Shown: in pieces, positions 4,337-28,147 of the stretch
How the letters are laid out: every line of letters begins with the position of its first letter
How positions within the stretch are numbered: the stretch's first letter is position 1
Sequence record: NC_005872.1
Reading direction: 5' to 3' (one strand)
DNA length: 28,337 nucleotides
Translations under genes and position numbers: made by a program
Notes under the pieces: generated by a model
The model's input: only the letters and a program-made list of their open reading frames with translations
The model's database searches: none
Told to the model about the DNA's origin: nothing

Positions 4337-4420
4337 CTTTTCGAAACACGGTATTTTTCCTCTTTACAAACATGTAATGCAGCTATTTGACGTGTGTAAA
4401 GGGCTATGAAAAAAGGGGGG

Positions 4421-4918
4421 CTATTTGGCTGGAGGCTCTATGTGGACTTTCCGGTTGGCTGTCAGGTATACCGTTTCATCTGTCTTTACGTAGGGCTCTC
4501 CGTAAATCATCTTAAGTAGGTGGTTTAGAAAGCTTAGGATGATTGCCGTCCTATGCGCTATGGGGATTATACTAGAGAAGAATTTTCGGGCTTGGGGGTC
4601 TTTGATTATTAGGTCGTGGAGCCTAGGGGGCGATATAAACTTTAGTTTGTTTGTCGTGACTAACCGCTCCACCTCTCTTATCATGCCGTCTACCAATTGC
4701 CGATATTGGTCCATGCTTAGGCACACCAAAGCAACGTTGCCGAATGCCACCCTAGTCACACGACCCTCTTTTTCAAGCACGTAGATTAGTGCCTTTGCCC
4801 GACCATGCGATAACCCAAGTCTTTGCTGTATTAGGGAGGTGGTTTTACAACCGTCGGCTAATAGAGCCAATATATCTCTCAGGCGCACCAAAACTTCACG
4901 CGAGTGGCCTATTGGCAT
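4421..4918 (-). CDS. Winged-helix DNA-binding protein (ORF165a-type)
   Basis: HTH CKTTSLIQQRLGLSHGRAKALIYVLEKEGRV plus wing; paralog of 4983-5480 and 27405-28112. TTTATAAA lies 28 nt upstream. Confidence 0.85.
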   Translation of the reverse strand: MPIGHSREVLVRLRDILALLADGCKTTSLIQQRLGLSHGRAKALIYVLEKEGRVTRVAFGNVALVCLSMDQYRQLVDGMIREVERLVTTNKLKFISPPRLHDLIIKDPQARKFFSSIIPIAHRTAIILSFLNHLLKMIYGEPYVKTDETVYLTANRKVHIEPPAK

Positions 4919-4982
4919 ATCTATCTGATATAATCGGGTTTATAAATTTTGCCAATTCGAAAATGGGTGAGGTTGGTGTGTG

Positions 4983-5480
4983 TTAAACAGTAGTCTGTGG
5001 CTGGTTTATACCGCTTTTTGTAACAAAATACACAGTTTTTTCTCCTTTGGTGTAGGGCTCTCCGTATAGCATGCGTAGAGCCCCATTTAGGAATGATAGG
5101 ATGGCGGCGTTTCTATAGTCTACCGGCACTAGTTTGGCTATGAGTCTGAGGACTTTGTAGTCCTTTTGGATTAGTCTGTAGAGCCTCATAGGGTATACAA
5201 ACTTCAGGTTATAGCTTTCAACTATCCTCTGTATCTCCCGGAGGATTGTGTTGACTAGGTTGTTGTATTCATCATCATTTAGGCACCACACGGCTGATTT
5301 TCCGATTTTCCACTCTCTTATGCAACCCTCACGTGCCAACGTCTTCAGTACATAGTAAGCCTCTACGTGCGTCGTGCCTAGTGTACGCATTATATAAGAC
5401 GTGGATTTACAACCGTCGGCTAACAACTCTAGCACGGCCTTTTTGCGGTTTTTCACCCTTTCTGTAATACCGGTTGGCAT
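4983..5480 (-). CDS. Winged-helix DNA-binding protein (ORF165b-type), tandem paralog
   Basis: Shares LLADGCK(S/T)TS and the C-terminal ILSFLN..L.M.YGEPY.K.(D/E).TVY with the adjacent gene. Confidence 0.85.
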   Translation of the reverse strand: MPTGITERVKNRKKAVLELLADGCKSTSYIMRTLGTTHVEAYYVLKTLAREGCIREWKIGKSAVWCLNDDEYNNLVNTILREIQRIVESYNLKFVYPMRLYRLIQKDYKVLRLIAKLVPVDYRNAAILSFLNGALRMLYGEPYTKGEKTVYFVTKSGINQPQTTV

Positions 5481-5492
5481 ATCTGTCTGATA

Positions 5493-6008
5493 TTGTGGGG
5501 TTTTAATGGTTTTTGCTGGGGGCTAGGGTTATTAATGGGTGTGTCGGCTTTCTCAATGCTAGTGGCTATAATATACGTTAAGCGGGATTGTCCGATATGC
5601 CAGTCTTTTCTTAAGCACACCATAATCAAGGGCGCCACGGCACGTAAGTGTGTGCCGCTTATCTTTAAGGACGTGGATATGGTGCCTCTCAGTGAGAAGA
5701 GGTTGGTGTGGAGCTATGAGTTTGACCCTAACCTAGGGCTTGTGTTTCGGATTTACGTGCCTTTCCTTGTGATTGCCGACGTGGATGAAAAGTATTCTAT
5801 TAAACAGATTTTCTTTAAGACGCCTCTTATTCCTAAGATTCCCGTTGGGTTTAGTGAGCCGGAGGTGAGAGAGGTTATTTATACCACATATTCATGGTGT
5901 GGATATGGAAAAGCCTTGTCAAAAGATGTTGAACCTTCTGGAGGTGTTGAACCAGTTGAAAAACCAAGGCGGAGAAGGCGCTCGCCACGCTCAGAGGATA
6001 ATGAGTGA
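5493..6008 (+). CDS. Hypothetical protein with basic C-terminal tail
   Basis: Long ORF. The track start (TTG 5493) is doubtful; ATG 5556 lies 27 nt after TTATTAAT. CPIC motif and tail KPRRRRRSPRS. Confidence 0.65.
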   Translation: MWGFNGFCWGLGLLMGVSAFSMLVAIIYVKRDCPICQSFLKHTIIKGATARKCVPLIFKDVDMVPLSEKRLVWSYEFDPNLGLVFRIYVPFLVIADVDEKYSIKQIFFKTPLIPKIPVGFSEPEVREVIYTTYSWCGYGKALSKDVEPSGGVEPVEKPRRRRRSPRSEDNE

Positions 6009-6117: not shown

Positions 6118-6381
6118 ATGGCTGAGGACCCTCTCCGTGAGTGTGTATATCAATTATACTATAATATAATCAGAACCACGGTTGGCGTCTACGTGCCGTC
6201 AAGGCTGGCTCAATGCCTAGCTGTCCTAAAGCTTCAGTTGATTTTTATCGCTAAGTCTACGGGTGATGATATTGATTTTGCCATGTCTAACTGGGGCTAC
6301 ACATGTGGCCCCAATTTCTGTGCCGTGCCGGCTAATTTCGTGGAGATTCTAGTCTACGCTAAAACGCGGTTTGGTTACTAG
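6118..6381 (+). CDS. Hypothetical protein (87 aa)
   Basis: ATG start, AT-rich box about 26 nt upstream, fills the gap between neighbouring genes. Confidence 0.7.
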   Translation: MAEDPLRECVYQLYYNIIRTTVGVYVPSRLAQCLAVLKLQLIFIAKSTGDDIDFAMSNWGYTCGPNFCAVPANFVEILVYAKTRFGY

Positions 6382-6419
6382 AGGCGTAAAATTTAAAAAT
6401 CCGCATTTCATAAGGATAC
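6381..6419 (+). promoter_or_regulatory. Core early-type promoter cassette (partial copy)
   Basis: 6381-6423 is identical over 43 bp to 21105-21147 (GAGGCGTAAAATTTAAAAATCCGCATTTCATAAGGATACATGG). Confidence 0.85.
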
Positions 6420-6814
6420 ATGGGCGCACCCAACCAACAACAAACTCAGGACAGAAGCGTGGACTTTTTCACCAATAAGATAGGCTGTAACGTGTCCAGT
6501 CCGCTTAAGCATGTGGACATAGTTGGGGAAATCGTGGAGGAGGCGGTTTACAATTTCCTCATTGACGCTGGCGATAAGATGTGCGTCGGTAACAAGATTG
6601 GGGTCTGGAAAGTGAGTAAATGTGAGGGGTCCTCAGGCTCAGGTGGTGAGAGGCGTAAATCGCTCTATGCCAAGGTGCCTAAGGGCATAGGCGTCACAGT
6701 ATATCTGGCTAATGGTAGGGTCCAAGGGAGGCTTATTGACATAGGCGTCTATGAGGTCCTTGTGGAGGTGGGGGGTGACATAATCTATATCCACAAGGAC
6801 CTAGTCTATGCGTT

Positions 6815-8814: not shown

Positions 8815-9135
8815 ATGAAAACTCAAACTAGACCCAAGAAGAGGAGGCCCAAAAACCTAGAGAGGCTCTATTTGGCACCTATACGCTCCGACGGCCTTCT
8901 GGTAGTCGTGGAGGGCGGTAGGTCCTATACTAAACAAGAGATCATGTTGCGGGCTACGGCGTTTCTTAACGTCTCCGACAGGATTGAGTGTGAGATTTGC
9001 GGCCGTGTCTATGACGGCACCAACTATTTCATGGTGGAGTATACCGGCCTCTTGGACAAGCTAAGGCATGCCTATTGCGGTGATTGTAAGCCTCAAATCA
9101 AGAAGATACTAGACATCATCTATAGGCGGATATGA
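8815..9135 (+). CDS. Zn-ribbon protein (C-x2-C-x25-C-x2-C)
   Basis: CEIC...CGDC; same spacing and internal residues as 26950-27327. Confidence 0.8.
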   Translation: MKTQTRPKKRRPKNLERLYLAPIRSDGLLVVVEGGRSYTKQEIMLRATAFLNVSDRIECEICGRVYDGTNYFMVEYTGLLDKLRHAYCGDCKPQIKKILDIIYRRI

Positions 9136-9491: not shown

Positions 9492-9516
9492 TCCCAACTT
9501 TTTTCTATTTACAAAC

Positions 9517-9580
9517 CTCTAAACTTGGTTAGACTTTTATCTCTCGGCGTGGTCCGGAGGACCTCTCGCTTTATCTCGGC
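9517..9580 (+). repeat. 64-nt dispersed intergenic repeat (copy 1)
   Basis: 60/64 identical to 23131-23194; a degenerate copy lies at 15366-15408. Confidence 0.9.
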
Positions 9581-12013: not shown

Positions 12014-12363
12014 TGAAATGGTTTACCCACATAATTTGGGGCGCCTTTTTTCCGATATTGTTAGGCGTGGACGTACGTGAGGCGGTTTCATTGGCTGTGT
12101 TTCACACGGTATTGACGGACACCCTGGGGCATGTCGGACATGGACCTTACGTTAGGCGTGCTTCTTATCACGACGTCTTATCACTTTTCTTTGGTATTAT
12201 GATTGCGGCTATGATGCACAATTTGGCATATCTATGGCTAGGCGCTATCCACGTGGTGCTTGACAAGCTATCTCCCGGGCGGTTAGGTGTCAGCTATCTG
12301 TATTCTCTTGTGTGGGCCATTATACCCGCGATAATTTTATATATATTGGGTGTCCATCTTTAG
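12013..12363 (+). CDS. Membrane metal-dependent hydrolase, YdjM/DUF457 (DUF1286-like)
   Basis: FTH, TD.LGH, RRASYH and GAIHVVLDKLSPG follow the His/Asp pattern of YdjM-like proteins; TAATG coupling to the upstream gene. Confidence 0.6.
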   Translation: MKWFTHIIWGAFFPILLGVDVREAVSLAVFHTVLTDTLGHVGHGPYVRRASYHDVLSLFFGIMIAAMMHNLAYLWLGAIHVVLDKLSPGRLGVSYLYSLVWAIIPAIILYILGVHL

Positions 12364-14859: not shown

Positions 14860-15257
14860 TGCGGTATATATTGGCCGCAATAGCGATATTGGCCGCGCTG
14901 GCTGGCGTAGGATACATAACGCAAACTCGCGGCACCGTGGTCTACGGCGTATTTGACGGTGTCGGCGTTGCATATGAGGGTCATTACTACCTTATTGAGG
15001 GGAATGCTGTCAAGACTCCAGCTAATTCCACGATTCTTAAGGGCAAATTCATCTTATGGGGCGGCTACCTCATAAACGGCACGGAGGTTAAGCCTAAGCA
15101 CGTAATGGCGGCTTTTGTGACCAACAACGTGATTGTCGTGACTGGCACTATTGAGGTGGTGGCTGGTGAGGTCCATAAGATAGGCAACTATACCGTGGTT
15201 ACTGGTAATCCGGCTAGGGTGCTGGTTGTAGACGGCTACCTCTACCACCCTAAGTAA
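14856..15257 (+). CDS. Small N-anchored beta-rich protein
   Basis: ATGA overlap, N-terminal hydrophobic helix, followed by a T6 tract (15266-15271). Confidence 0.8.
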   Translation: MMRYILAAIAILAALAGVGYITQTRGTVVYGVFDGVGVAYEGHYYLIEGNAVKTPANSTILKGKFILWGGYLINGTEVKPKHVMAAFVTNNVIVVTGTIEVVAGEVHKIGNYTVVTGNPARVLVVDGYLYHPK

Positions 15258-15447
15258 AACCCGACTTTTTTCTTCTTTACAAACATATAACGCAGCTATT
15301 TTACTTTTTTCTAGGGTGTGGGGGAGCAACGGCACTCTTACCACATGTCAAGAAGGGCTTTGATATTTATCTCTCGCTTTGGCTAAGGGGGCCTCCCGCT
15401 TTATCTCGAAACTAAGGGGGAGGATAAGAGTTTTATATCTATGAGAT

Positions 15448-18526: not shown

Positions 18527-18553
18527 CTTTAAATATTGCACCCATTTTTTAAT

Positions 18554-19381
18554 ATGCCGCGTAACTTAAATAGGATTCCGATTCCTATGATGTTGGCATT
18601 AGCTGTGGCCGTGGGCTTAGCTGTCACTATTATTATCCAGATTACTGTGTTGGCGCCTCTACCGGCTGTCGTGGCGCCTATTGAGACCTCTGCCTCTAGC
18701 CTTGACACGGGTTCTAGCTCATATACCACGTCTTTGACTGTGGCGTCGGGCTATTATGTCAACTATCCCACATTAGCTGGTCTTGGAAAGATTCAGCTTA
18801 AGGTGAACACGACGGGGTGGTATTACCTCCAGAATGACTTAGTTCTCACGGTGGCGAGGAGGAGCACGGGTGACGTAACGTTTACCCTAGGCAGTGGCTA
18901 TAAGGTATATGTGAAGGAGATTAACACCACACACGCCTTTGTGTTCTATGATGAATATTCCACAGGCGTCGTGGCTAAAAAGGTCCAAGTGGGCTCTACC
19001 GGGTGGTATATCTATCACCCAGTTACCACAAACTATGACACCACCACGGTAAACACCATTAAGAGTCTGTTAACCTCATTGGGATATACCTATGCCTATG
19101 TATTCCAGCCTAGGGCTGACTACTTGAAATTTGACCCTAGCACCAAGAGCTTCTCTATATATTTTGACTATGTGGGCAGTGACGGCACGGTTAACTTGAA
19201 ATACCACTACTTCACCAACTCCACTAGTTTCACACCTTTGCCAATTAACGCGGCGGTTACTGTCAACGGAATTGAACAAATTGACATGTACAACTACGTG
19301 CTCTATCCGACGTGGGCGCTTTTCTACTATCAAGCAACCTCTAGCGTCGAAACCGCCTTTACAATTACTCCGGTCCAGTAA
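18554..19381 (+). CDS. N-anchored beta-rich putative virion envelope protein ('RIPIP' family)
   Basis: RIPIPMMLALAVAVGLAVTIIIQIT leader. ATG 18554 lies 26 nt after TTTAAATA (the track start is TTG 18536). T6 terminator at 19382. Confidence 0.8.
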   Translation: MPRNLNRIPIPMMLALAVAVGLAVTIIIQITVLAPLPAVVAPIETSASSLDTGSSSYTTSLTVASGYYVNYPTLAGLGKIQLKVNTTGWYYLQNDLVLTVARRSTGDVTFTLGSGYKVYVKEINTTHAFVFYDEYSTGVVAKKVQVGSTGWYIYHPVTTNYDTTTVNTIKSLLTSLGYTYAYVFQPRADYLKFDPSTKSFSIYFDYVGSDGTVNLKYHYFTNSTSFTPLPINAAVTVNGIEQIDMYNYVLYPTWALFYYQATSSVETAFTITPVQ

Positions 19382-19390
19382 TTTTTTCTA

Positions 19391-19429
19391 GAGGCGTAAA
19401 ATTTTTTAACCAGCATGTTTCTTTAGGAT
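19391..19429 (+). promoter_or_regulatory. Degenerate early-type promoter core
   Basis: CTAGAGGCGTAAAATTT is shared with 6378-6394; followed by ...GTTTC...GGAT-ATG. Confidence 0.7.
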
Positions 19430-19822
19430 ATGGGCGAAACTCCGGAGGGTCCAATGCCAAACAAAAAGGGTAAGTCGGAGGGCGGACAGATTAGGACAAT
19501 TCCCCTAAAGTACTACAAACAGGAATATGATATGGCGGCTGATTTGGTGCGGATGTTGCGTGGTTTGGGCGTTTTCATGCATGCTAAATGTCCGCGGTGT
19601 GGGGCTGAGGGCTCTGTTAGTATCGTGGAAACTAAAAACGGGTATAAGTACTTGGTGATAAGGCACCCGGACGGAGGCACGCACACGGTGCCTAAAACGG
19701 ACATTTCGGCTATACTTAAGGAGCTCTGTGAGGTTAAGAAGGACCTAGAGTATGTCCTTAAGCGCTATAAGGAATATGAGGAGGAGGGTGGGGTTAAGTT
19801 CTGTGCTGAGGGAAGGAAATGA
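19430..19822 (+). CDS. Zn-finger protein with C-terminal coiled coil (ORF131-type)
   Basis: CPRC...YLVIRH...TH metal-binding pattern and a heptad C-terminus. Confidence 0.8.
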   Translation: MGETPEGPMPNKKGKSEGGQIRTIPLKYYKQEYDMAADLVRMLRGLGVFMHAKCPRCGAEGSVSIVETKNGYKYLVIRHPDGGTHTVPKTDISAILKELCEVKKDLEYVLKRYKEYEEEGGVKFCAEGRK

Positions 19823-20386: not shown

Positions 20387-20400
20387 ATCGCTCTGATTCG

Positions 20401-20437
20401 GCAGTAACACTTAAAAACCCATGTTTCACTAGGATAT
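20401..20437 (+). promoter_or_regulatory. Degenerate early-type promoter core
   Basis: GCAGTAACACTTAAAAACCCATGTTTCACTAGGATAT-ATG resembles the cassette core. Confidence 0.65.
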
Positions 20438-21031
20438 ATGGCAGAAACTAAGTCTGTGGTGGCGTGGAATAGCCTATACGTGCGGGTAAAGTCTCACTCA
20501 GGGTGGTCCAACTATAGGGCGTGGGGTGACGGCACTCAATACGGCATTGAATTTAAGGGCACTACGCTTGGGTATTGGAAAGATGTCCTAAATCTCCTAG
20601 GGCGCATGGTGAGGGCTAAGGCTGAGCCTCCTAGGGAGGTGGTTAAGACGGCTAAGCTCTTATTTGAGCACGTAGAGGCTTATCTACGGCATAGCCACAT
20701 CTTTGGTGATGACTTTGTCGGCACGGCTGTGGATGTTGAAGACCCGGAGTCTCCTTACATAGACTTTACGCTATACATGGAGGTGACCACGAAACATATT
20801 GACGTGGTGGACCATATAGTGTCCGACGGTGGGGAGGACCTTGGGGAGGCTGTGCCTGGTTGGTTTGTCACTATTGCGGCTACATATGAGGGATATGACG
20901 GAGGCAATGGGGAGGGTAAGCACACGGTTAAGCGTAAGCTAGTGTTTAAGGGGCAGATTGACCGTGACGTATTGTGGCGGGAGTTCTATACAACTATTAA
21001 GCGTGCGGTTAACGCTCTGCCTTTGGAATAG
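20438..21031 (+). CDS. Paralog family member 1 (AKAEP / GYDG / AYNA family)
   Basis: Shares YRAW, RM..AKAEP, GYDG...HTV and RAVNALP with 23326, 23977 and 26068. Confidence 0.85.
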   Translation: MAETKSVVAWNSLYVRVKSHSGWSNYRAWGDGTQYGIEFKGTTLGYWKDVLNLLGRMVRAKAEPPREVVKTAKLLFEHVEAYLRHSHIFGDDFVGTAVDVEDPESPYIDFTLYMEVTTKHIDVVDHIVSDGGEDLGEAVPGWFVTIAATYEGYDGGNGEGKHTVKRKLVFKGQIDRDVLWREFYTTIKRAVNALPLE

Positions 21032-21052
21032 GGGCTTTTTTGGCCTTTATTT

Positions 21053-21143
21053 GCTTTTAAATCGGCGCGCCTTTTTTGTTTCAACTCTCCCCCTTTCTTT
21101 ACGTGAGGCGTAAAATTTAAAAATCCGCATTTCATAAGGATAC
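21053..21143 (+). promoter_or_regulatory. Full promoter cassette: box A (-91), box B (-66), TTTACG-N5-CGTAAA (-46), TATA (-28)
   Basis: GCTTTTAAAT at 21053, GTTTCAAC at 21078, palindrome 21098-21114, TTTAAAAA, GGATAC-ATG. Confidence 0.9.
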
Positions 21144-21644
21144 ATGGCTAAGAAGAAAAAGACCCAAATCCAGGAGGGGCTGGAGGCCCCTCAAAAGGAT
21201 ACTGTTTTTCCTGAGACGGGTGCGGCCCAAGGGGCCGCGGCGGCTACTCAAGTGACTATACCGGATGACGTGGCTGAGCTGATTAGAGCCACGCTTAAGG
21301 TGGCGATAGCACAACGTAAGATATATGGCCTTAGCACTACGTTGACATCATTGACTAAGACGGTGGCTAGGGCTCTGGAGAAATACATTGACGGTATACC
21401 GACGGCAACGCTTAGGGATTTCATCAAGCGTGAGGTGACGGCTATGGGGTATCCGGTTATTGAGGCTAGGGTTGACTACACGGGTGTGCCGTTTATTGCT
21501 GAGACGGTGATACTGTATAGGAACTATGAGGAGATTGTGGACATGATTAGGACAGGGCGCGCGGAGACTCTTAAGCCAGTTATTACGGGTGACGGCATTG
21601 ACCCCATATACGACAAAATGGTTAAGACGGGGTCCAATGCCTAA
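21144..21644 (+). CDS. Hypothetical protein with Lys-rich N-terminus
   Basis: Leaderless ATG directly at the end of the cassette; 166 aa. Confidence 0.85.
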   Translation: MAKKKKTQIQEGLEAPQKDTVFPETGAAQGAAAATQVTIPDDVAELIRATLKVAIAQRKIYGLSTTLTSLTKTVARALEKYIDGIPTATLRDFIKREVTAMGYPVIEARVDYTGVPFIAETVILYRNYEEIVDMIRTGRAETLKPVITGDGIDPIYDKMVKTGSNA

Positions 21645-21909
21645 GAGTATCTGGGAGCTGGAGGAGGAGGTAAGGAGGTTGTTGCTGAGCGGCGTAGAGT
21701 TCCAAGGGCGTAAGGTGGGGGCTACGGTTGGCGCGGATTGGTTCAAGTGGGTTAAGCTAGAGGAGACTAACCCCAGGCGGCTACTGGCGATATACGTAAA
21801 GGAGGCTACTATGGTTACCGTATACGCTATCGTGTCCGACGACGACAAGGTGGACATTATAAGCGTGTCACTAGACAGAATGTGTAGGGGTGGGGGAGCG
21901 CATGCTTAA
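21637..21909 (+). CDS. Hypothetical protein (about 90 aa)
   Basis: In the track frame 21589-21909; ATG 21637 overlaps the upstream stop. Confidence 0.7.
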   Translation: MPKSIWELEEEVRRLLLSGVEFQGRKVGATVGADWFKWVKLEETNPRRLLAIYVKEATMVTVYAIVSDDDKVDIISVSLDRMCRGGGAHA

Positions 21910-22288
21910 TGAGACCCCATTGGCTCAGGTGTATAGGTCGTGTATGGAGGCTGTCAATGATGCTGAGTATTGCGCTAAGGTGATTGACGTGGTTATTGAC
22001 TCCGCGAAGCGGGTGTATAGCTACGTGCCTGAGGGTCGGACTAAGCCTAAAATCTACGTGTTGTTAGCCCCAGACGTTGATTATGTGGCCGGCGTGTTGG
22101 TGGACAAGGACAAGAAGTCGGTGATTATACTACTGAGGGCGCCACGGCATGCTGTGTCATTGCTATATGAGCGTAATAAGGACGGGTGGTTCACTCTGAA
22201 GAGTGCCACGGTGTCTAACAATGAGTTGGCGGCTTTGATGAATGGGCCCTTTAAACTATCAGACAACTCTGAGGGGGATGGGCTATGA
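21902..22288 (+). CDS. Hypothetical protein (about 128 aa)
   Basis: In the track frame 21890-22288; G-rich RBS before ATG 21902; YRSC...EYC motif. Confidence 0.75.
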   Translation: MLNETPLAQVYRSCMEAVNDAEYCAKVIDVVIDSAKRVYSYVPEGRTKPKIYVLLAPDVDYVAGVLVDKDKKSVIILLRAPRHAVSLLYERNKDGWFTLKSATVSNNELAALMNGPFKLSDNSEGDGL

Positions 22289-22587
22289 GGGGGGCTGGTA
22301 ATGTCAAGATACGCATATCGGTGACTGAGCAATTGATTAGGTTCATATTGTGCCGGAGGCTTAAGGGGGCGCGTGGCAACGTCTACACGATTAAGGCCGC
22401 GCAGATATGCGCGGAAATATTCCGTGGGGAGAGTAAAGTGCCTGTGTCGTGTAAAGTGACGGTGAGGAGGTATTTGTTGGGCGCTCTATATGACGCTATC
22501 GTGCATGATTTGACGGACAAATACCGTATCGTGGTGAACGTTGGTAAGGCGTGGGAGTTGTTGGGGTGTGAGGAATATGAGGATTAG
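22285..22587 (+). CDS. Basic protein, possibly winged-helix-like
   Basis: ATGA coupling; a helix-strand-helix-helix-hairpin pattern is suggested by eye only. Confidence 0.65.
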   Translation: MRGAGNVKIRISVTEQLIRFILCRRLKGARGNVYTIKAAQICAEIFRGESKVPVSCKVTVRRYLLGALYDAIVHDLTDKYRIVVNVGKAWELLGCEEYED

Positions 22588-23068
22588 GGGCTACCTCCCT
22601 AGGGGTATTGCCTTGACGTGGTTGTTAGGTATTCCGCTGGAGGAGTGTGACGCGCCTATGACTAAGGATAAGCTTAGGGATATCATAAATCGGTTTATCA
22701 ACACCTCCTTAGGCAATGTGCCGGTGAAATATGATGTCCGTGAGCTGAGCCGCTCTTTCATGATTAAGTTCACGGCTACGGTGTCTGAGCCGGCGGCTAT
22801 GTGCCGTAAACACTCAGACTATGAGTTTAAGGATTGCGTATACACATGCGTCTCTACCAATATACCTCTACAGGAGTGTGAGGAGGTGTGTCGTCAAGAG
22901 GTGACTGAGGAGTGTAACAAGTACGGTGAGACGGCTGTGACTATGAACATAACTAGCTTGGCGCATGACATGGCGTCACTATTTGAGGCTTGTAACGTGA
23001 GGTATTATGCGCACATTGGGGCCTCTACGGATGTCTATAGCATATTATTCGTGGCCTTTTTCGCATAG
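22577..23068 (+). CDS. Cys-rich hypothetical protein
   Basis: In the track frame 22541-23068; GAGG before ATG 22577; CxxxC repeats. Confidence 0.75.
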   Translation: MRIRGYLPRGIALTWLLGIPLEECDAPMTKDKLRDIINRFINTSLGNVPVKYDVRELSRSFMIKFTATVSEPAAMCRKHSDYEFKDCVYTCVSTNIPLQECEEVCRQEVTEECNKYGETAVTMNITSLAHDMASLFEACNVRYYAHIGASTDVYSILFVAFFA

Positions 23069-23130
23069 TCCGCTTTTCGAAATCGGCTTTTTTCTTCTTT
23101 ACAAATAGCTAATGCAGCTATTTGACATTT

Positions 23131-23194
23131 CTCTAAACTTGGTTAGACATTAATCTCTCGGCGTGGTCCGGAGGACCTCCCGCTTTACCTCGGC
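23131..23194 (+). repeat. 64-nt dispersed intergenic repeat (copy 2)
   Basis: 60/64 identical to 9517-9580. Confidence 0.9.
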
Positions 23195-23234
23195 ACTCGG
23201 CGCGCTTTGGCCCCTATTTCCTATCGCTATATTT

Positions 23235-23325
23235 GCTTTTAAATAAGCGTGCTTTTTATGTTTCAATTGTCCTCCTTACTTTACGGAGGCCGTAAACTTT
23301 AAAAATCCGTGTTTCATAGGGATAC
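23235..23325 (+). promoter_or_regulatory. Full promoter cassette
   Basis: Box A 23235, box B GTTTCAAT 23260, perfect palindrome 23280-23296, ATG 23326. Confidence 0.9.
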
Positions 23326-23862
23326 ATGGTCAGGTCCAAAATAACTCCGGAGGAGGGTCCGACTAAAAAGAAGGTTTTTTTAAAGGTGAGGGCAGGTGGG
23401 GCAGAAACTGAATATACCGCGGTCTACGAGGACCTTGAAATCGGGGGGCTGACTAGGGGCGGCAGGAGTGACGTCAAGAAGGTCCTAAGGCGGATTATTA
23501 GGGCGTATAATGACCTCCCAGAGGACGTGGTTAGGGCGGCTATCACGGTGATTAACCACATATTGTCGGCTGTCAACTTGGGCGTCAAGGAGGCATGGGG
23601 TGGCGTGAGCGTAGAGGTGGGGGATAATGACAAATTGACCCTACGCATCTCCCTCTACCACTACATTGACAATGAGAGGGATGAAAGTGGTTGGGCTGGG
23701 GAGATAAAGGCTAGCTTTATCGGCTATGATGGCTTGTTTGCGGATAGCTCACACACGGTGATTAAAAGAGTCAACTACGGTGAGGATATAGACGCTATGA
23801 GCCTCTACCGTGAGTTGATTAGGGTGGCTAGACACGCTTACAACGCAATACCGTCTTATTAG
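23326..23862 (+). CDS. Paralog family member 2
   Basis: GEIKASFIGYDG...HTV and ARHAYNAIP. Confidence 0.85.
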   Translation: MVRSKITPEEGPTKKKVFLKVRAGGAETEYTAVYEDLEIGGLTRGGRSDVKKVLRRIIRAYNDLPEDVVRAAITVINHILSAVNLGVKEAWGGVSVEVGDNDKLTLRISLYHYIDNERDESGWAGEIKASFIGYDGLFADSSHTVIKRVNYGEDIDAMSLYRELIRVARHAYNAIPSY

Positions 23863-23885
23863 GCCGGAGGCTAGACGCTTAATTT

Positions 23886-23976
23886 GCTTTTAAATCGGCG
23901 CGCCTTTTTTGTTTCAACTCTCCCCCCGTCTTTACGTGGGGCGTAAAATTTAAAAATCTAGGTTTCATAGGGATAC
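23886..23976 (+). promoter_or_regulatory. Full promoter cassette
   Basis: Box A 23886, box B 23911, perfect palindrome 23931-23947. 23882-23926 is identical to 21049-21093 (45 bp). Confidence 0.9.
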
Positions 23977-24489
23977 ATGGCCCACACACAAAATACTGGG
24001 GCTGTCAAAAAAAGGAGGATTTTTTTGAACGTCTGGGGGCATGATGAATTTGAGGAGAATGACGGCAGGACCTACTACCACGCTAGAATCGGTAAGCTAG
24101 AGGTAGAGGGGTGGGCTTACTATGCGGACCGTGCCGATATCAAAAAGTTGCTGGAAAAGGCTCTAAAGGCTCAGGAGCCCCTACCGGAGAAGGTAGAGAA
24201 GGCTATTGACTCTATAGTTAACCACTTGATTGCGGTGGTCCAATTGGGCTCTACCACGGCGGCGGCACATGCTGGCTTTGACTATAATGAGAGGGAGGGG
24301 ATTAGCTTTACGGCGGAGATGTTCTATGATGATAACGGTGGGTGGGGCATGGAGGTTAGGGTGGTTAACAATAGGTATAACGGCATGATTAGGCTGGTTA
24401 AGAGGGTCCGCTTAAAGGAGGTGTCTACGGAGGCTATTCGTAAGGTGGTGGCTAAGGTGGTGCGGCAGGCTTATAACGCCTACCTTTAA
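23977..24489 (+). CDS. Paralog family member 3
   Basis: DIKKLL..ALKAQEPLP, NHL.AVVQLG and RQAYNAYL. Confidence 0.85.
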   Translation: MAHTQNTGAVKKRRIFLNVWGHDEFEENDGRTYYHARIGKLEVEGWAYYADRADIKKLLEKALKAQEPLPEKVEKAIDSIVNHLIAVVQLGSTTAAAHAGFDYNEREGISFTAEMFYDDNGGWGMEVRVVNNRYNGMIRLVKRVRLKEVSTEAIRKVVAKVVRQAYNAYL

Positions 24490-24503
24490 CAACGCCTTAA
24501 GGT

Positions 24504-24595
24504 CTTTTTAAATAAGCACGCTTTTTTCCTTTCTATTCTCCCCCCGTCTTTACGTGGGCAGTAAAATTTAAAAATCCCGATTTCACAATGATACC
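24504..24595 (+). promoter_or_regulatory. Full promoter cassette (variant)
   Basis: Box A variant 24504, box B variant CTTTCTAT 24529, TTTACG-N5-AGTAAA 24549-24565. Confidence 0.85.
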
Positions 24596-24901
24596 ATGGT
24601 GACTAAACCCCTCACGTATAACCCCAAGGAAATGAAAAGGATTTTTTCCAAAATCACGGACCCCACGGCTAGGGTAAGGGCCATAGTGGCCCACGTGTTG
24701 GCGGATATACCGGAGGCTTATGACGTGTGGGTGGGGGAGGGTGTCATAACTATTAGGCCGGTCGGCAGTGGCAGATTTATTGGTGACGTGGTGAGGCAGG
24801 TGGTTTGGTGGCTTAAGGAGTTCGGGTGGGTGGCATTGGTTAGGCCCATTGAAAACGGCTATAGGATTGAATACCTCCCAGTGGTTGGCTATGGCTGGTG
24901 A
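24596..24901 (+). CDS. Hypothetical protein (101 aa)
   Basis: Leaderless start at the end of the cassette. Confidence 0.8.
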   Translation: MVTKPLTYNPKEMKRIFSKITDPTARVRAIVAHVLADIPEAYDVWVGEGVITIRPVGSGRFIGDVVRQVVWWLKEFGWVALVRPIENGYRIEYLPVVGYGW

Positions 24902-25361
24902 CTTCGATATTAGGGAGGCTTGTCCTAATCGGGTGCGCTACCTTAATGGTGCTGTCAACGCGCTGATTTTCAAATACCCCGACGTTGACGTGGTTGACAA
25001 CGGCGTGGAACTTGGTCCATGCGTCTACCGCACGATATTTAGGATGGCTGTCTCTAATCCGGAGGACAACAAGGCCGTGGCTTTGGCTATAGCTAGGATT
25101 AATGAGTATATCCGTGACGTAAAGGCTAGGCTTGATGGCTACGGTTGGGAGATTTTCGAAAAGGAGACCTACATAGAGGAGGGCTATGTCTACGCAGAGG
25201 TTAAGTGGATGAGGCGGGTGAGGATACCGGGTAAGAAGTACGTTTCGCTTATGGAAATCTATGAGTTGGCGTTACCGCATATCGAAAAGAACCTAAGGGA
25301 GAGTGCGGAGTTTTTCGAGTTGTTGCGTGGTGGGTCTGAGGCCGTTGCGGAGGCTCAGTAA
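24891..25361 (+). CDS. Hypothetical protein (about 156 aa)
   Basis: In the track frame 24849-25361; ATG 24891 overlaps the upstream gene end with a GTGG RBS-like site. Confidence 0.75.
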   Translation: MAGDFDIREACPNRVRYLNGAVNALIFKYPDVDVVDNGVELGPCVYRTIFRMAVSNPEDNKAVALAIARINEYIRDVKARLDGYGWEIFEKETYIEEGYVYAEVKWMRRVRIPGKKYVSLMEIYELALPHIEKNLRESAEFFELLRGGSEAVAEAQ

Positions 25362-25393
25362 TTGGCGATAGGTTTTTATACGGCTATTTCTTT

Positions 25394-25708
25394 TTGATAG
25401 TGCCACGTGATGTAAAAGAAGTGACTAGGATGCTGATTAGGCTTAACATGCTTATGCGGAGGTTTAAGGAGAGGGGCGGTTATCCCATAATGTACGTGGC
25501 GGACCGCATGGGCGATAGACACGACGCGGTTGTACTTATTGTGGATATCCTCTATGAGGAGAGGGAGCGTGCTGAGGCCGTGGTAAAAGAGGTCTTGGAC
25601 CTCTTGGGGGCCCACAACATTAAGGTGNTTGACCATAAGCTTGACTCTTTCATGGTGCCTTTTAGGGAGGTGTGGCGGTTTGTGGCTATGGTGGCGGTTA
25701 ACCATTAG
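25394..25708 (+). CDS. Hypothetical protein (about 102-104 aa)
   Basis: TTTTTATA at 25373; GTG 25400 fits the TATA spacing; one N at 25628. Confidence 0.7.
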   Translation: MIVPRDVKEVTRMLIRLNMLMRRFKERGGYPIMYVADRMGDRHDAVVLIVDILYEERERAEAVVKEVLDLLGAHNIKVXDHKLDSFMVPFREVWRFVAMVAVNH

Positions 25709-25710
25709 CT

Positions 25711-25974
25711 ATGGCTATGTCGTGGCGTAAGGCTGTCCTTAATGTCGTGTTGTGTATGGCGCTTATATCGGCTGGCTTTGTGTGGTATTTCTATGCTGTA
25801 TTCTACGGAGCGGATAGCTATAGGGTCTTGGTCCTTAAGGCCGTGATGTTCTTTAGCGCTATTATCTTGGCTTTAGAGGCTGTGAGGTTTGCTATTGAGG
25901 AGGAGTATTGCATTGCGGCTTTGCTTGACGTGTGGGCTTTGCTTATGGTATTGGGGGCTGTCTTTGGGCTTTAG
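25711..25974 (+). CDS. Small 3-TM membrane protein
   Basis: Three hydrophobic segments; starts 3 nt after the upstream stop. Confidence 0.75.
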   Translation: MAMSWRKAVLNVVLCMALISAGFVWYFYAVFYGADSYRVLVLKAVMFFSAIILALEAVRFAIEEEYCIAALLDVWALLMVLGAVFGL

Positions 25975-25976
25975 TT

Positions 25977-26067
25977 GCTTTTAAATAAGCACGCTTTTTG
26001 TCTTTCAACTATCCCTCCGATTTTACGGAGGCCGTAATCTTTAAAAGTCCGTGTTTCGTAAGGATAC
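25977..26067 (+). promoter_or_regulatory. Full promoter cassette
   Basis: Box A 25977, box B CTTTCAAC 26002, TTTACG-N5-CGTAAT 26022-26038. Confidence 0.9.
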
Positions 26068-26616
26068 ATGGCCTCCCAACTAAAACCCCAAGTATTCCCG
26101 GAAAAAGAAGCCACTTTTTATGAACTAAAGGTCGGCAAGGTCTACACCAAGTATAGGGCGTGGATAGGGCCCTATATCGCTAAGGGCATAACCATGGGTC
26201 CGGAGGATAAGGTTAAGGAGGTGGTGAGGCGCATGGCACAAGCTAAGGCTGAGCCTCTTGACGTGATTAAGTCGTTGGTGGAGTCCGTGGCGGAATACGT
26301 GTCCACGGCTAGTGAGTCCGGACTAATGGACATTGGCGTGGTGTTGGGCACGTTTTTCCACTTGGGTGAGTACATGGCTATAATGGTAAAGCTACAACGT
26401 CTAAGTGGTCCGTATAGTCACAACAGGGTGTGGGGCGAAATTAAGGTTATGTTTAAGGGTTATGATGGCTTAAAGGCGTTGTCTAAGCACGTGGTGATGC
26501 GCTACGTGGAATTCTACGCGCCTAATAAGGTGGATAAGGCGCAACTATACAACGTGCTATATGAGGCGGCACGCATTGCCTATAACGCTTACGGTTGGGC
26601 CCACAAAAACCTCTAG
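26068..26616 (+). CDS. Paralog family member 4
   Basis: KYRAW, RRMAQAKAEP, GEIKVMFKGYDG...KHV and ARIAYNAY. Confidence 0.85.
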   Translation: MASQLKPQVFPEKEATFYELKVGKVYTKYRAWIGPYIAKGITMGPEDKVKEVVRRMAQAKAEPLDVIKSLVESVAEYVSTASESGLMDIGVVLGTFFHLGEYMAIMVKLQRLSGPYSHNRVWGEIKVMFKGYDGLKALSKHVVMRYVEFYAPNKVDKAQLYNVLYEAARIAYNAYGWAHKNL

Positions 26617-26858
26617 CTTAGGGCCCCAACGTCTATAGGGTCTTTTTTGGGTCCTCTTTTTCCTTTACTTTTGTCAATATGCTGCATAGTATATTTGTAA
26701 AGGGCGGGCACGTGGCTTTTTCCTAAGGGGCGCATGTCCTTTATTTGCTTTTAAATCGGCACGGTTTAGGGCCCTTTTTCTTTTTTCTTTTTAATATATA
26801 GAAATTAAAAAAGGGCCTTAATGTGCTTTTAAATCGGCGGATTTTGGGGCCTTTATTT

Positions 26859-26949
26859 GCTTTTAAATAAGCGCGCTTAGGACCTTTCAATTGTCCGCNT
26901 GTCTTTACGGGGGGCGTAAACTTTAAAAATCCGTGTTTCGTAAGGATAC
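26859..26949 (+). promoter_or_regulatory. Full promoter cassette
   Basis: Box A 26859, box B CTTTCAAT 26884, perfect palindrome 26904-26920. Confidence 0.9.
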
Positions 26950-27327
26950 ATGGCCCGGGTGGGCCCCAAAATCGAAATAACCCACGGAGGCAAAAAATAC
27001 ACGGTTTTTTCCAAAGTCACGCACTTGGTGCCGCGCACGGAAAATGGGGAGGAGGCCGAATACGTGGTATTTGGTCCGGAAAAAGAGGGCGTGATAAGTG
27101 TCGTGGTGTTGGCGCCTAAGGACCTAAATGAGGAGGCGTTGGCTTTACGTGTCAAGTGGTTCAACGACACTAAGCCACGGTGTGTCAAGTGTGGCGCGGC
27201 ATATAATGGCAAAAACCACTTTAGGGTCGTGGCTATACGCAACGGCACCTATTATCTAGACGCGGTGTGTGACAAGTGCGAGCCACGCATTACGTGGCTG
27301 TCCGCAATAGTCATTGGCAGGTCCTAA
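26950..27327 (+). CDS. Zn-ribbon protein (ORF126-type)
   Basis: CVKC-x25-CDKC; paralogous domain to 8815-9135. Confidence 0.85.
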   Translation: MARVGPKIEITHGGKKYTVFSKVTHLVPRTENGEEAEYVVFGPEKEGVISVVVLAPKDLNEEALALRVKWFNDTKPRCVKCGAAYNGKNHFRVVAIRNGTYYLDAVCDKCEPRITWLSAIVIGRS

Positions 27328-27404
27328 GGGGCCTAAATAGTCGGCTTTTTTCCGTCTATAATATCGCTTTTTTGTGGGAAAATCGGACTTTAGTGTTGGG
27401 CCTC

Positions 27405-28112
27405 TTAATTTGCTTTTAAATCAGCGCCTCCCTTACCATCTAATACGTGGCGATACTGACTTAATAGTCGGTCTATTGCCATGGTGACTAATTCGCTTGT
27501 CGTGAGTCCTAATGTCCGCGCGGCCTCTAGCATGTCATTATGCATGGCTGTCGGCACCTTAAATGTCACAAGTCTATAGGCTGACGTATAGTGGCTTAGG
27601 TTTATGTCGGCTAGCGTTGGTGCCTTTTTGCAAAATCTAGGTGTCACGTGGAATAATAACCTCCGTTGTCTCTTATCCATGGGCTTACCTAATAGGTCCT
27701 CTAATGCGGAGGCGATAAAGTGTAATGTGTGTCCGTGCGTGCTATTGACGTCTACGTATTTGGCAAATATATTGTGCGCCTCCGTGTCCGCGGCTATTAA
27801 TCTAAGCATGTCTGAGGGCGTGATATACCTCCGGCGTGAATTGCATATAAGGCGCCATAATGTACGCTTTATTTCAAATATCGCATTGGTGGCGGCATTT
27901 TCATCTACGCACCATATTGTGGCGCGGCTTATTTCGACCTTAAGCACCATTTTGTTTTTGGCTAGCTGATATAATGCATTGCGCGCCATGGACCATGACA
28001 CGTCTAGCTTATTGGCTACTCTAGCTATTGTCGTGCATGGTGCCTCCGTAATCATGTATCTTAGCGTCTTTATCATGCGCGTGTGCATTGTGTCGGACAT
28101 TTTGCGTGGCAT
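27405..28112 (-). CDS. Winged-helix protein (ORF165 family) fused to a C-terminal ribbon-helix-helix domain
   Basis: N-terminal HTH CTTIARVANKLDVSWSMARNALYQL and second domain YITPSDM...LGKP. C-terminal VTFKVP...EAARTLGLTTSELVTMAIDRLL is CopG/RHH-like. Confidence 0.8.
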   Translation of the reverse strand: MPRKMSDTMHTRMIKTLRYMITEAPCTTIARVANKLDVSWSMARNALYQLAKNKMVLKVEISRATIWCVDENAATNAIFEIKRTLWRLICNSRRRYITPSDMLRLIAADTEAHNIFAKYVDVNSTHGHTLHFIASALEDLLGKPMDKRQRRLLFHVTPRFCKKAPTLADINLSHYTSAYRLVTFKVPTAMHNDMLEAARTLGLTTSELVTMAIDRLLSQYRHVLDGKGGADLKAN

Positions 28113-28147
28113 ATCTTATTGATACGCGCGGTTTATTAAATTATTCG

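Follow-up and report, generated by a model that had tools for sequence, protein, structure and literature searches.

The window analyzed here spans the entire linear genome of Pyrobaculum spherical virus (PSV; AJ635161 / NC_005872), to which the queried region is 100% identical; it is 28,337 bp long with perfect inverted terminal repeats of 190 bp. It carries 48 annotated genes, nearly all on the plus strand and nearly all labelled 'hypothetical'. In its right ~8 kb lies a cluster of genes, variable in content among relatives, that are preceded by copies of an intergenic repeat, which we call the cassette. Six full copies are present, all on the plus strand. Cassette 1 (21045-21146, 103 bits by nhmmer) is upstream of gp35, the first gene of the gp35-gp39 unit, with box A at 21053-21062, box B at 21078-21085, a palindrome at 21098-21114, a TATA box at 21116-21123 and the ATG at 21144. 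Cassette 2 (23227-23328) precedes gp40, with box A at 23235, box B at 23260, the palindrome at 23280-23296 and the ATG at 23326, and cassette 3 (23878-23979) precedes gp41, with the same parts at 23886, 23911, 23931-23947 and 23977. Cassette 4 (24496-24598) is upstream of gp42, which opens the gp42-gp45 unit, and has a palindrome with one mismatch at 24549-24565 and the ATG at 24596. Cassette 5 (25969-26070) belongs to gp46 (box A 25977, box B 26002, palindrome with one mismatch 26022-26038, ATG 26068) and cassette 6 (26851-26952) to gp47 (box A 26859, box B 26884, palindrome 26904-26920, ATG 26950). The deposited sequence has an ambiguous N at 25639 and another at 26899, the latter falling within cassette 6, in the stretch that separates box B from the palindrome.

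The original prediction, made from the sequence by itself, had described six cassettes of ~95 bp at these sites with equal internal spacing, and every coordinate that it gave is correct. Box A (GCTTTTAAAT) starts at 21053, 23235, 23886, 25977 and 26859, in each case at -91 from the ATG; box B, (G/C)TTTCAAY, is at -66; the palindrome TTTACG-N5-CGTAAA starts at -46; TTTAAAA is at -28; and GGATAC stands directly 5' of the ATG. The palindrome is exact at 21098, 23280, 23931 and 26904, and the six occurrences in PSV with at most one mismatch compare with 0.07 expected from shuffles. The copy before 24596 had been reported as displaced by 1 nt, and a single extra base (GATACCATG, between GATAC and ATG) accounts for the shift, with the internal spacing of its boxes the same. 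A repeat search groups all six into a single family, 119 nt long, without gaps and of 69-87% identity, and over the central 85 bases the PSV cassettes are 74-91% mutually identical. The six copies are thus real.

Core-only copies had also been proposed before the genes at 6420, 19430 and 20438, and these fared unequally. The proximal-half copy upstream of gp09 (6370-6422, plus strand, nhmmer E 2.7e-10) is strong: the transcription factor B (TFB) recognition element (BRE), the TATA box and TTTCATAAGGATAC are intact, and a weakened palindrome is kept in which the left half-site has become GTTACT and TTAC-N7-GTAA is retained, the same form as in the relative L080. Upstream of gp34 (20388-20440, plus strand) there is a weak, degenerate cassette (nhmmer E 3e-5) that is more complete in some relatives. 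The sequence upstream of gp32 (19380-19432, plus strand), found only at 61% identity, is a related but distinct promoter type, conserved in 12 relatives, with GGCGTAAAA as its BRE, TTTC..GGATATG, the TATA box TTTTTTAA and no left half-site.

Metagenome contigs were scanned with TTTACG-N5-CGTAAA-N-TTTAAAA, yielding 63 loci (given L numbers here), of which about 50 are PSV-like hot-spring contigs, many of them with several matches to the pattern. A nhmmer profile made from the six PSV copies and run on PSV and the fetched loci gave 155 cassette hits, among them 110 distinct full-length copies. Each relative has 6-10 cassettes per ~9-kb cluster, on a single strand in every locus, and each cassette is followed by an open reading frame (ORF) of about 100-230 amino acids. 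The PSV-like loci are clearly syntenic with PSV gp23-gp48, with proteins 45-90% identical, and the first genes downstream of the cassettes in PSV and its relatives belong to at least five unrelated families. No cassette was found in IMG/VR viral contigs or in other GenBank phage or archaeal-virus records, and Thermoproteus tenax spherical virus 1 (TTSV1) has no comparable promoter repeat. A host-promoter or provirus origin was considered and rejected: a scan of genome contigs gave only scattered single matches and none in Thermoproteales. Almost all of these matches were in bacterial metagenome-assembled genomes (MAGs; Campylobacter, Bacteroidales and others), including four Campylobacter MAG hits that are one recurring sequence, and the single match in an uncultured-archaeon MAG (L067) lacks cassette features.

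Spacing was measured in 119 distinct copies from PSV and the metagenomes. Box B is 19 nt from the palindrome in 102 of the 107 copies where it was detected, and the palindrome is 18 nt from the TATA box in 111 of 118; from palindrome to ATG, 86 copies have 46 nt, while in 25 others there are 47 nt. The 47-nt form is the rule for gp42-family promoters (13 of 13 in relatives) and is sporadic elsewhere. Box A is more loosely placed, by ±1 nt, standing 42 nt from the palindrome in 74 copies, 43 in 16 and 41 in 6. The claim of indel-free spacing is therefore sound from box B to the ATG and less strict between box A and box B.

Sequence conservation among cassettes is largely indifferent to the genes that follow them. 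Cassettes of different genes in the same genome are 77.3% identical (protein identity ~4%), those at orthologous positions in different genomes 77.6% (protein identity 68%), and those at non-orthologous positions in different genomes 74.9% (protein identity ~4%). Because identity between genes within a genome equals that between orthologous positions, it is set by constraint: these values are a plateau arising from constrained positions and not a trace of recent duplication. There is at most a small within-genome excess, which could reflect gene conversion. In PSV, gp40, gp41 and gp46 are paralogous with gp34 (25-29% amino-acid identity), and gp35, gp42 and gp47 are unrelated.

The cassette had been described as a four-box unit, and the comparison shows that this unit is not indivisible. 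We found 43 solo copies of box A in PSV and its relatives, all on the coding strand, and in a distant lineage (L040, L049, L053 and L055), whose gp35 homologue is ~47% identical, the palindrome, TATA box and GATACATG are kept at 46 nt while boxes A and B are absent. Since box A is separable and also found alone, the intergenic control module that PSV-like globuloviruses have in the cassette is a composite one. Since the distant lineage keeps the proximal module without box A or box B, we read the proximal half as the older core unit and the distal half as a later addition specific to the PSV clade. In the distant lineage the palindrome/TATA promoter occurs on both strands; L053 and L055 are contig Ga0079996_114663, which at 28,338 bp is nearly equal in length to PSV.

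The proximal half spans -47 to +3. Its TATA box, TTTAAAAA, is at -28 from the ATG in five of the six PSV copies and at -29 in the gp42 copy, as expected of an archaeal core promoter with an A/T-rich box ~24-28 bp upstream of the start. The BRE, GTAAAA at -34..-29, carries a G six positions before the TATA start (-6) and an A three positions before it (-3), the bases by which a strong TFB site is recognized (PMC11065993). The right arm of the palindrome (-35..-30) coincides with this BRE, as had been proposed. In promoters of PSV that lack the cassette (gp04, gp20, gp26, gp27, gp48) the A/T box likewise starts at -27/-28. Because of this shared geometry, and because Pyrobaculum transcripts are reported to be leaderless (PMC2151090), TTTAAAAA is most readily taken as the TATA box of a leaderless mRNA. 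The proximal half is thus most likely a strong archaeal BRE/TATA promoter with the mRNA starting at or next to the ATG, and sequence, comparative evidence and TATA geometry together bear out the proposal that the cassettes are promoters defining separate transcription units.

The palindrome itself is dyad-symmetric, is centred at -38, and has half-site centres 11 bp apart, about one helical turn; through its right arm it overlaps the BRE, as expected of an operator that acts by promoter occlusion. Its arms are nearly invariant. At the inner five positions of each arm the bases pair in 121-135 of the 138 copies compared, whereas at the outermost position they do so in 94 of 137. The outermost right base is A, C or T, uncompensated on the left, the 5-nt spacer is asymmetric and G-rich, and no compensatory changes in the arms were seen in the 138 copies. 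The lack of compensatory changes and the asymmetric spacer fit recognition of double-stranded DNA by a dimer and not a hairpin, and the palindrome is most likely an operator for a dimeric regulator.

The distal half, made up of box A, a G+C block, a T-tract and box B, is rich in T and pyrimidines on the sense strand. T makes up 45-58% of that strand, and 59 of 81 distinct copies contain five or more consecutive T between -110 and -60. Oligo-T tracts are sites at which transcription by the archaeal RNA polymerase ends. Because the T-tract with box B (CTTTTTTCTTTCAA) resembles other PSV operon ends (CTTTTTTCTTCTTTACAAA), and because the polymerase stops at such tracts, it is plausible that the distal half acts as a terminator or insulator for the upstream unit. 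Box B is conserved and rigidly phased even where the T-tract is missing, and for this reason it is more likely an auxiliary protein contact, held 20 bp (two helical turns) from the palindrome.

Solo copies of box A stand in tandem, two or three together, upstream of cassettes of the gp47 type and, in some relatives, within the terminal repeats. In PSV further solo copies start at 26747, 26825 and 27412 (features 26739-26762, 26817-26840 and 27404-27427, all on the plus strand). The first two are the first and second of three tandem box A copies upstream of gp47, an arrangement kept in relatives. The third lies past the last plus-strand gene, where gp47 and gp48 converge, with no promoter after it, and has the same position in L020, L021, L023, L052 and L054. 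Between the first two, at 26769-26817, is a T/A-rich element with inverted ends (GGGCCC TTTTTCTTTTTTCTTTTTAATATATAGAAATTAAAAAA GGGCC); relatives show either this layout again or a perfect A/T palindrome TATTTCTATTTAATAAATAGAAATA.

Among the 48 PSV proteins, Pfam DNA-binding signatures were found only in gp04, gp05 and gp48. These are paralogues with an N-terminal winged helix-turn-helix (wHTH)-like region and PF22376, the 'PSV transcriptional regulator domain' (PSV_trans_reg_dom), and all three are on the minus strand: gp04 (ORF165a, PDB 2VXZ) at 4421-4918, gp05 at 4983-5480 and gp48 at 27405-28112, convergent with the cassette cluster. L020, L054, L023 and L052 each have a homologue of gp48 in the corresponding position, and in L021 the match there is weak and partial (E 8.6e-4). 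Even where gp48 identity is down to 46% the palindrome stays the same, and the regulator homologues are too few for a co-variation analysis. We regard gp04, gp05 and gp48 as candidate regulators of the cassette and nothing more. A ribbon-helix-helix (RHH) domain in the C-terminus of gp48 was rejected, as one weak PHROG hit had no backing from Pfam or PDB searches. Also set aside was TTTACG-N10-CGTAAA (TTTACGTAGGGCTCTCCGTAAA) at 4485-4506 in the 3' part of gp04, which neither gp05 nor the L080 homologue shares and which is probably a chance occurrence. The three wHTH genes share a conserved promoter/5' region of their own, of the TTTATAAACCCGATTATATCAGATAGATATGCCA type (4913-4948, 5475-5510 and 28107-28142, minus strand), a separate family distinct from the cassette.

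Taken together, these observations suggest a composite promoter-operator with a distal module, whose repeated copies also serve as recombination points, and as an explanation of the whole we hold this to be probable, with considerable room for doubt. A dimeric, sequence-specific protein bound to the palindrome would overlap the TFB site, so that it could control all cassette-driven units at once, most probably by occluding their promoters and so repressing them. One of the virus's own wHTH proteins (gp48, gp04 or gp05) would be the likeliest regulator. The distal half would probably end the upstream transcript, with box B providing at least one further protein contact, and the repeated cassettes could act as recombination points, through which relatives acquire, lose or rearrange modules made of a gene and its promoter. 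Repression by occlusion is favoured over activation because the palindrome lies across the BRE of a promoter that is strong already and because most characterized regulators of archaea and their viruses repress by occluding the BRE, TATA box or start site (PMC5569661). The sequences themselves show the anatomy and spacing of the cassette, its conservation in more than 100 copies, its association with unrelated genes and its lack of an RNA-structure signal. From them we infer where transcription starts, which protein binds, what sign the regulation has, that the distal half terminates transcripts, and when the genes are expressed; the original reading of these genes as 'early' depends on that sign, repression or activation.

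Several points weigh against this explanation. Conservation of TTTACG, GTAA and TTTAAAA is partly ascertainment, the same pattern having been used to fetch the loci; the extra copies within fetched loci, TTTC at -14..-11, box B and box A are free of this effect. In the distal half, 22 of the 81 cassettes have no run of at least five T, and a terminator role leaves unexplained why box B is conserved in the absence of the T-tract. Beside the cluster, gp48 is seemingly absent in L032, L019 and L063, and the promoters of gp04, gp05 and gp48 have no palindrome and show no sign of autoregulation. Finally, a palindrome upstream of or overlapping the BRE can also serve an activator, as with TrmBL1 and the Thermococcales glycolytic motif (TGM).

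This last point leads to a rather unlikely alternative, in which the palindrome is an upstream activating sequence where a viral or host dimer, sitting over the BRE and immediately upstream of it, recruits TFB and the TATA-binding protein (TBP), so that the genes would be delayed or induced instead of expressed early and then shut off. The palindrome's centre at -38 lies upstream of the TATA box, 6-N5-6 sites of wHTH dimers upstream of BRE/TATA can activate (TrmBL1/TGM), and the candidate regulators have their own, different promoters; moreover, a host activator of viral promoters, Sta1, is known (PMC1635249). Yet activation seems unnecessary for a BRE and TATA box of strong-promoter quality, a dimer bound to a right arm that is itself the BRE should compete with TFB, and the known regulators of archaeal viruses are mostly repressors (PMC5569661). 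It is also conceivable, though quite improbable, that the repeats are mainly recombination substrates or relics, homogenized by gene conversion around an ordinary promoter that has no special regulation. The variable order and presence of cassette-bounded modules would agree with this, as would the paralogy of four downstream genes (gp34/40/41/46) and the 77.3% identity of same-genome cassettes vs 74.9% for non-orthologous ones across genomes. Conversion, however, should conserve uniformly, whereas here the boxes are fixed and the spacers drift; spacing is held in more than 100 copies in front of unrelated genes, the left half-site is nearly invariant although it has no role in a plain promoter, and the 48 PSV proteins yielded no integrase or recombinase.

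Two further alternatives would give the cassette, or part of it, a role outside promoter control. If it acted as RNA, box A would be a second TATA-like box ~27 nt upstream of a C-A step in box B, giving rise to a leader or small RNA in which the palindrome forms a hairpin. Box A (TTTTAAAT followed by the G+C block) does resemble other PSV TATA regions and its distance to box B fits a start, but it has no BRE-like purines upstream, its solo copies have no consistent start signal after them, and the palindrome arms have no compensatory changes, so that we consider an RNA role very improbable. A structured RNA element was accordingly rejected: there is no covariation, fold energies of the PSV copies are unremarkable (z -1.8 to +0.8), and an Rfam search of the cassette gave no match. 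Another hairpin, in which the C-rich tract (-56..-49) would pair with the G-rich spacer, seemed persuasive in individual copies but was dropped as a compositional effect only, with pairing of 0.41-0.44 vs 0.41-0.43 in shuffled sequence. The other alternative concerns box B and the CRISPR repeats of the host. Positions 1-600 of L036 (WYEB01000054.1), from the same assembly as the PSV-like contig L022 (WYEB01000131.1), are a CRISPR array with the 24-nt repeat GTTTCAATTCTCTATTTGAGATGC. Its leader-proximal spacer (GGCCACCACTCCCGTGTTTACGTGGGGCGTAAAATTTAAAAATC; the leader is presumed) matches the palindrome/TATA region, the best-conserved part of the cassette, with 36 of 44 bases aligned and 1 mismatch in the L050 and L005 copies, and CCG stands in the position of the protospacer adjacent motif (PAM) on the opposite strand. 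The box B consensus CTTTCAATTCTC (PSV 21078-21089 and other copies) has an exact 11-nt run in common with the start of this co-occurring repeat (its first 11-12 bases correspond to the consensus), a run that is the complement of the 8-nt CRISPR RNA (crRNA) handle (5' handle end) and that only 25 of 20000 shuffled L036 repeats attain in what is a post hoc comparison with one repeat. Box B might on this basis be a functional mimic of the host repeat end, recruiting a repeat-binding factor or interfering with CRISPR, but the comparison was made after the fact and covers half of a single repeat, and box B varies (CAAC, CTAT) at handle positions; we regard such mimicry as highly unlikely. The bolder proposal that box B purposely copies the final 11-12 bases found in the host repeat, through which copy cassettes recruit a repeat-binding or Cas protein, is a long shot of much the same order. 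Were it true, accessory-gene expression would be tied to the host CRISPR machinery, or box B would be a decoy, with host spacers targeting the adjacent palindrome/TATA. Box B as a type III 'anti-tag' was rejected by logic, since spacers with a CCN PAM would have NGG and not CTTTCAAT at that flank. A virus-borne solitary CRISPR repeat was rejected as well, only an 11-nt run of the 24-nt repeat, at box B, being in common.

Under the composite promoter-operator explanation the cassettes bound exchangeable modules, and the order and presence of such modules in L020, L054, L032, L010, L050, L003 and L022 do differ from PSV 20400-27400. In PSV gp40 is before gp42, in L050 it is after the gp42 unit; gp41 is on either side of that unit, depending on the relative; and extra modules of 124, 136, ~100 and ~228 amino acids come and go. 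This variation fits accessory genes exchanged by recombination at the repeats, and by analogy it matches the profile of anti-defence clusters in Sulfolobales viruses. The first genes driven by cassettes encode 96-230 amino acids and have no functional annotation in Pfam or PHROGs, where they fall only into self-named or unknown families. For the gp34/40/41/46 family (PHROG 20639; gp40 at 23326-23862) AlphaFold gives a confident alpha+beta model (predicted local distance difference test, pLDDT, 90.8) with no PDB match above a template modelling (TM) score of 0.34, so that this predicted structure is possibly a new fold. The predicted structure of the gp42 family has only generic matches to alpha/beta designs, which are uninformative. 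The gp47 protein (26950-27327) is ORF126, with PDB entry 2X5R. Outside the cassette cluster, gp13 (8815-9135) is a distant gp47/ORF126 paralogue (25% identity, Pfam ORF126-like E 4e-4).

The closest counterparts of the cassette are the consensus regulatory sequences of Sulfolobales viruses, described for the early genes of Sulfolobus islandicus rod-shaped virus 2 (SIRV2) and taken as a guide to anti-defence genes, by prediction, in Rudiviridae, Lipothrixviridae, Bicaudaviridae and, with their T6 promoters, Fuselloviridae (Bhoobalan-Chitty et al. 2024, PMC11065993). The analogy, already drawn in the original prediction, is apt. Both features on which that study relies, a predicted strong promoter and a sequence shared by several genes, are present in PSV, the latter in six full and up to three partial copies, and the genes concerned are likewise small, poorly conserved, single or first in their unit, and near a terminus. 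As in PSV, the Sulfolobales sequences are at most ~100 bp with a near-identical strong BRE/TATA core and precede small, poorly conserved, partly paralogous genes toward the end of a linear genome; the motif of Sulfolobus monocaudavirus 2 (SMV2) also has inverted repeats overlapping the BRE, which PMC11065993 reads as a repressor site. By contrast, PSV belongs to the Globuloviridae and infects a host of the order Thermoproteales, its sequence is unrelated, and it has an extra distal module; a text search of PMC11065993 gave no mention of Globuloviridae or Pyrobaculum. An Aca8-type regulator is known for the Sulfolobales system and none for PSV, and early expression and anti-defence activity have been shown for genes of SIRV2 and Sulfolobus islandicus filamentous virus (SIFV), whereas for PSV both would be predictions by analogy. 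We would therefore, by analogy, place the PSV cassette as a further case of a known, Sulfolobales-type regulatory sequence, to which it adds a composite structure, comparative depth and a regulator-operator hypothesis.

Other systems share single features. In Sulfolobus spindle-shaped virus 1 (SSV1), the F55 operators, through which one viral DNA-binding protein controls several promoters (T5, T6, Tind and Tlys; PMC5569661), are, as we propose for PSV, repeated sites that overlap the BRE or start and act by occlusion, but F55 is an RHH protein on tandem direct repeats, in place of a 6-N5-6 inverted repeat with wHTH candidates. SSV1 is moreover temperate, and PSV causes a non-lytic chronic infection. 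The Thermococcales glycolytic motif TATCAC-N5-GTGATA is, like the PSV site, a 6-N5-6 palindrome by the BRE/TATA of a many-promoter regulon; wHTH dimers of the TrmB family bind it, and whether it activates or represses depends on where it stands relative to the TATA box. Unlike in PSV, it serves a host regulon with a sugar-sensing regulator, and its sequence is unrelated. Integron gene cassettes resemble the PSV modules in that both are small gene modules, variable and open to reordering, with short conserved non-coding elements at their borders. PSV differs from integrons in having no integrase or attC-like fold, with no recombinase domain in its 48 proteins and no conserved fold, and in giving each module its own promoter instead of a shared Pc; any exchange of modules in PSV would, unlike in integrons, proceed by general homologous recombination.

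Few archaeal viruses are as poorly understood as the globuloviruses. About 98% of globulovirus proteins have no database match (bioRxiv 10.1101/2020.01.16.907410), and no description of globulovirus transcription was found in the searchable literature. The cassette delimits a putatively co-regulated set of 6-10 transcription units per virus and is a ready motif for spotting such genes in hot-spring metagenomes, a direct route to gene regulation in a virus family with almost all genes of unassigned function. With a defined 17-bp site paired with three candidate regulators, one of which, gp04, has a crystal structure (2VXZ), the regulator-operator question is directly testable. If the Sulfolobales precedent holds, the cassette genes, including the gp34/40/41/46 family, would be the first anti-defence candidates in Thermoproteales viruses.

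A second conserved intergenic element is found at operon ends in PSV, with CTTTACAAAC..TAATGCAGCTATTTGAC followed by ATCTCTCG..GGTCCGGAGGACCTCCCGCTTTA. It lies at 4344-4403, 9508-9580, 15257-15410 and 23079-23194, and in inverted orientation at 26672-26702. A similar CTTTACA...GCTGCA element occurs three times in TTSV1 (L081:5610-5704, 12067-12161 and 18533-18627), and because of this likeness the operon-end element may be older than the promoter cassette.

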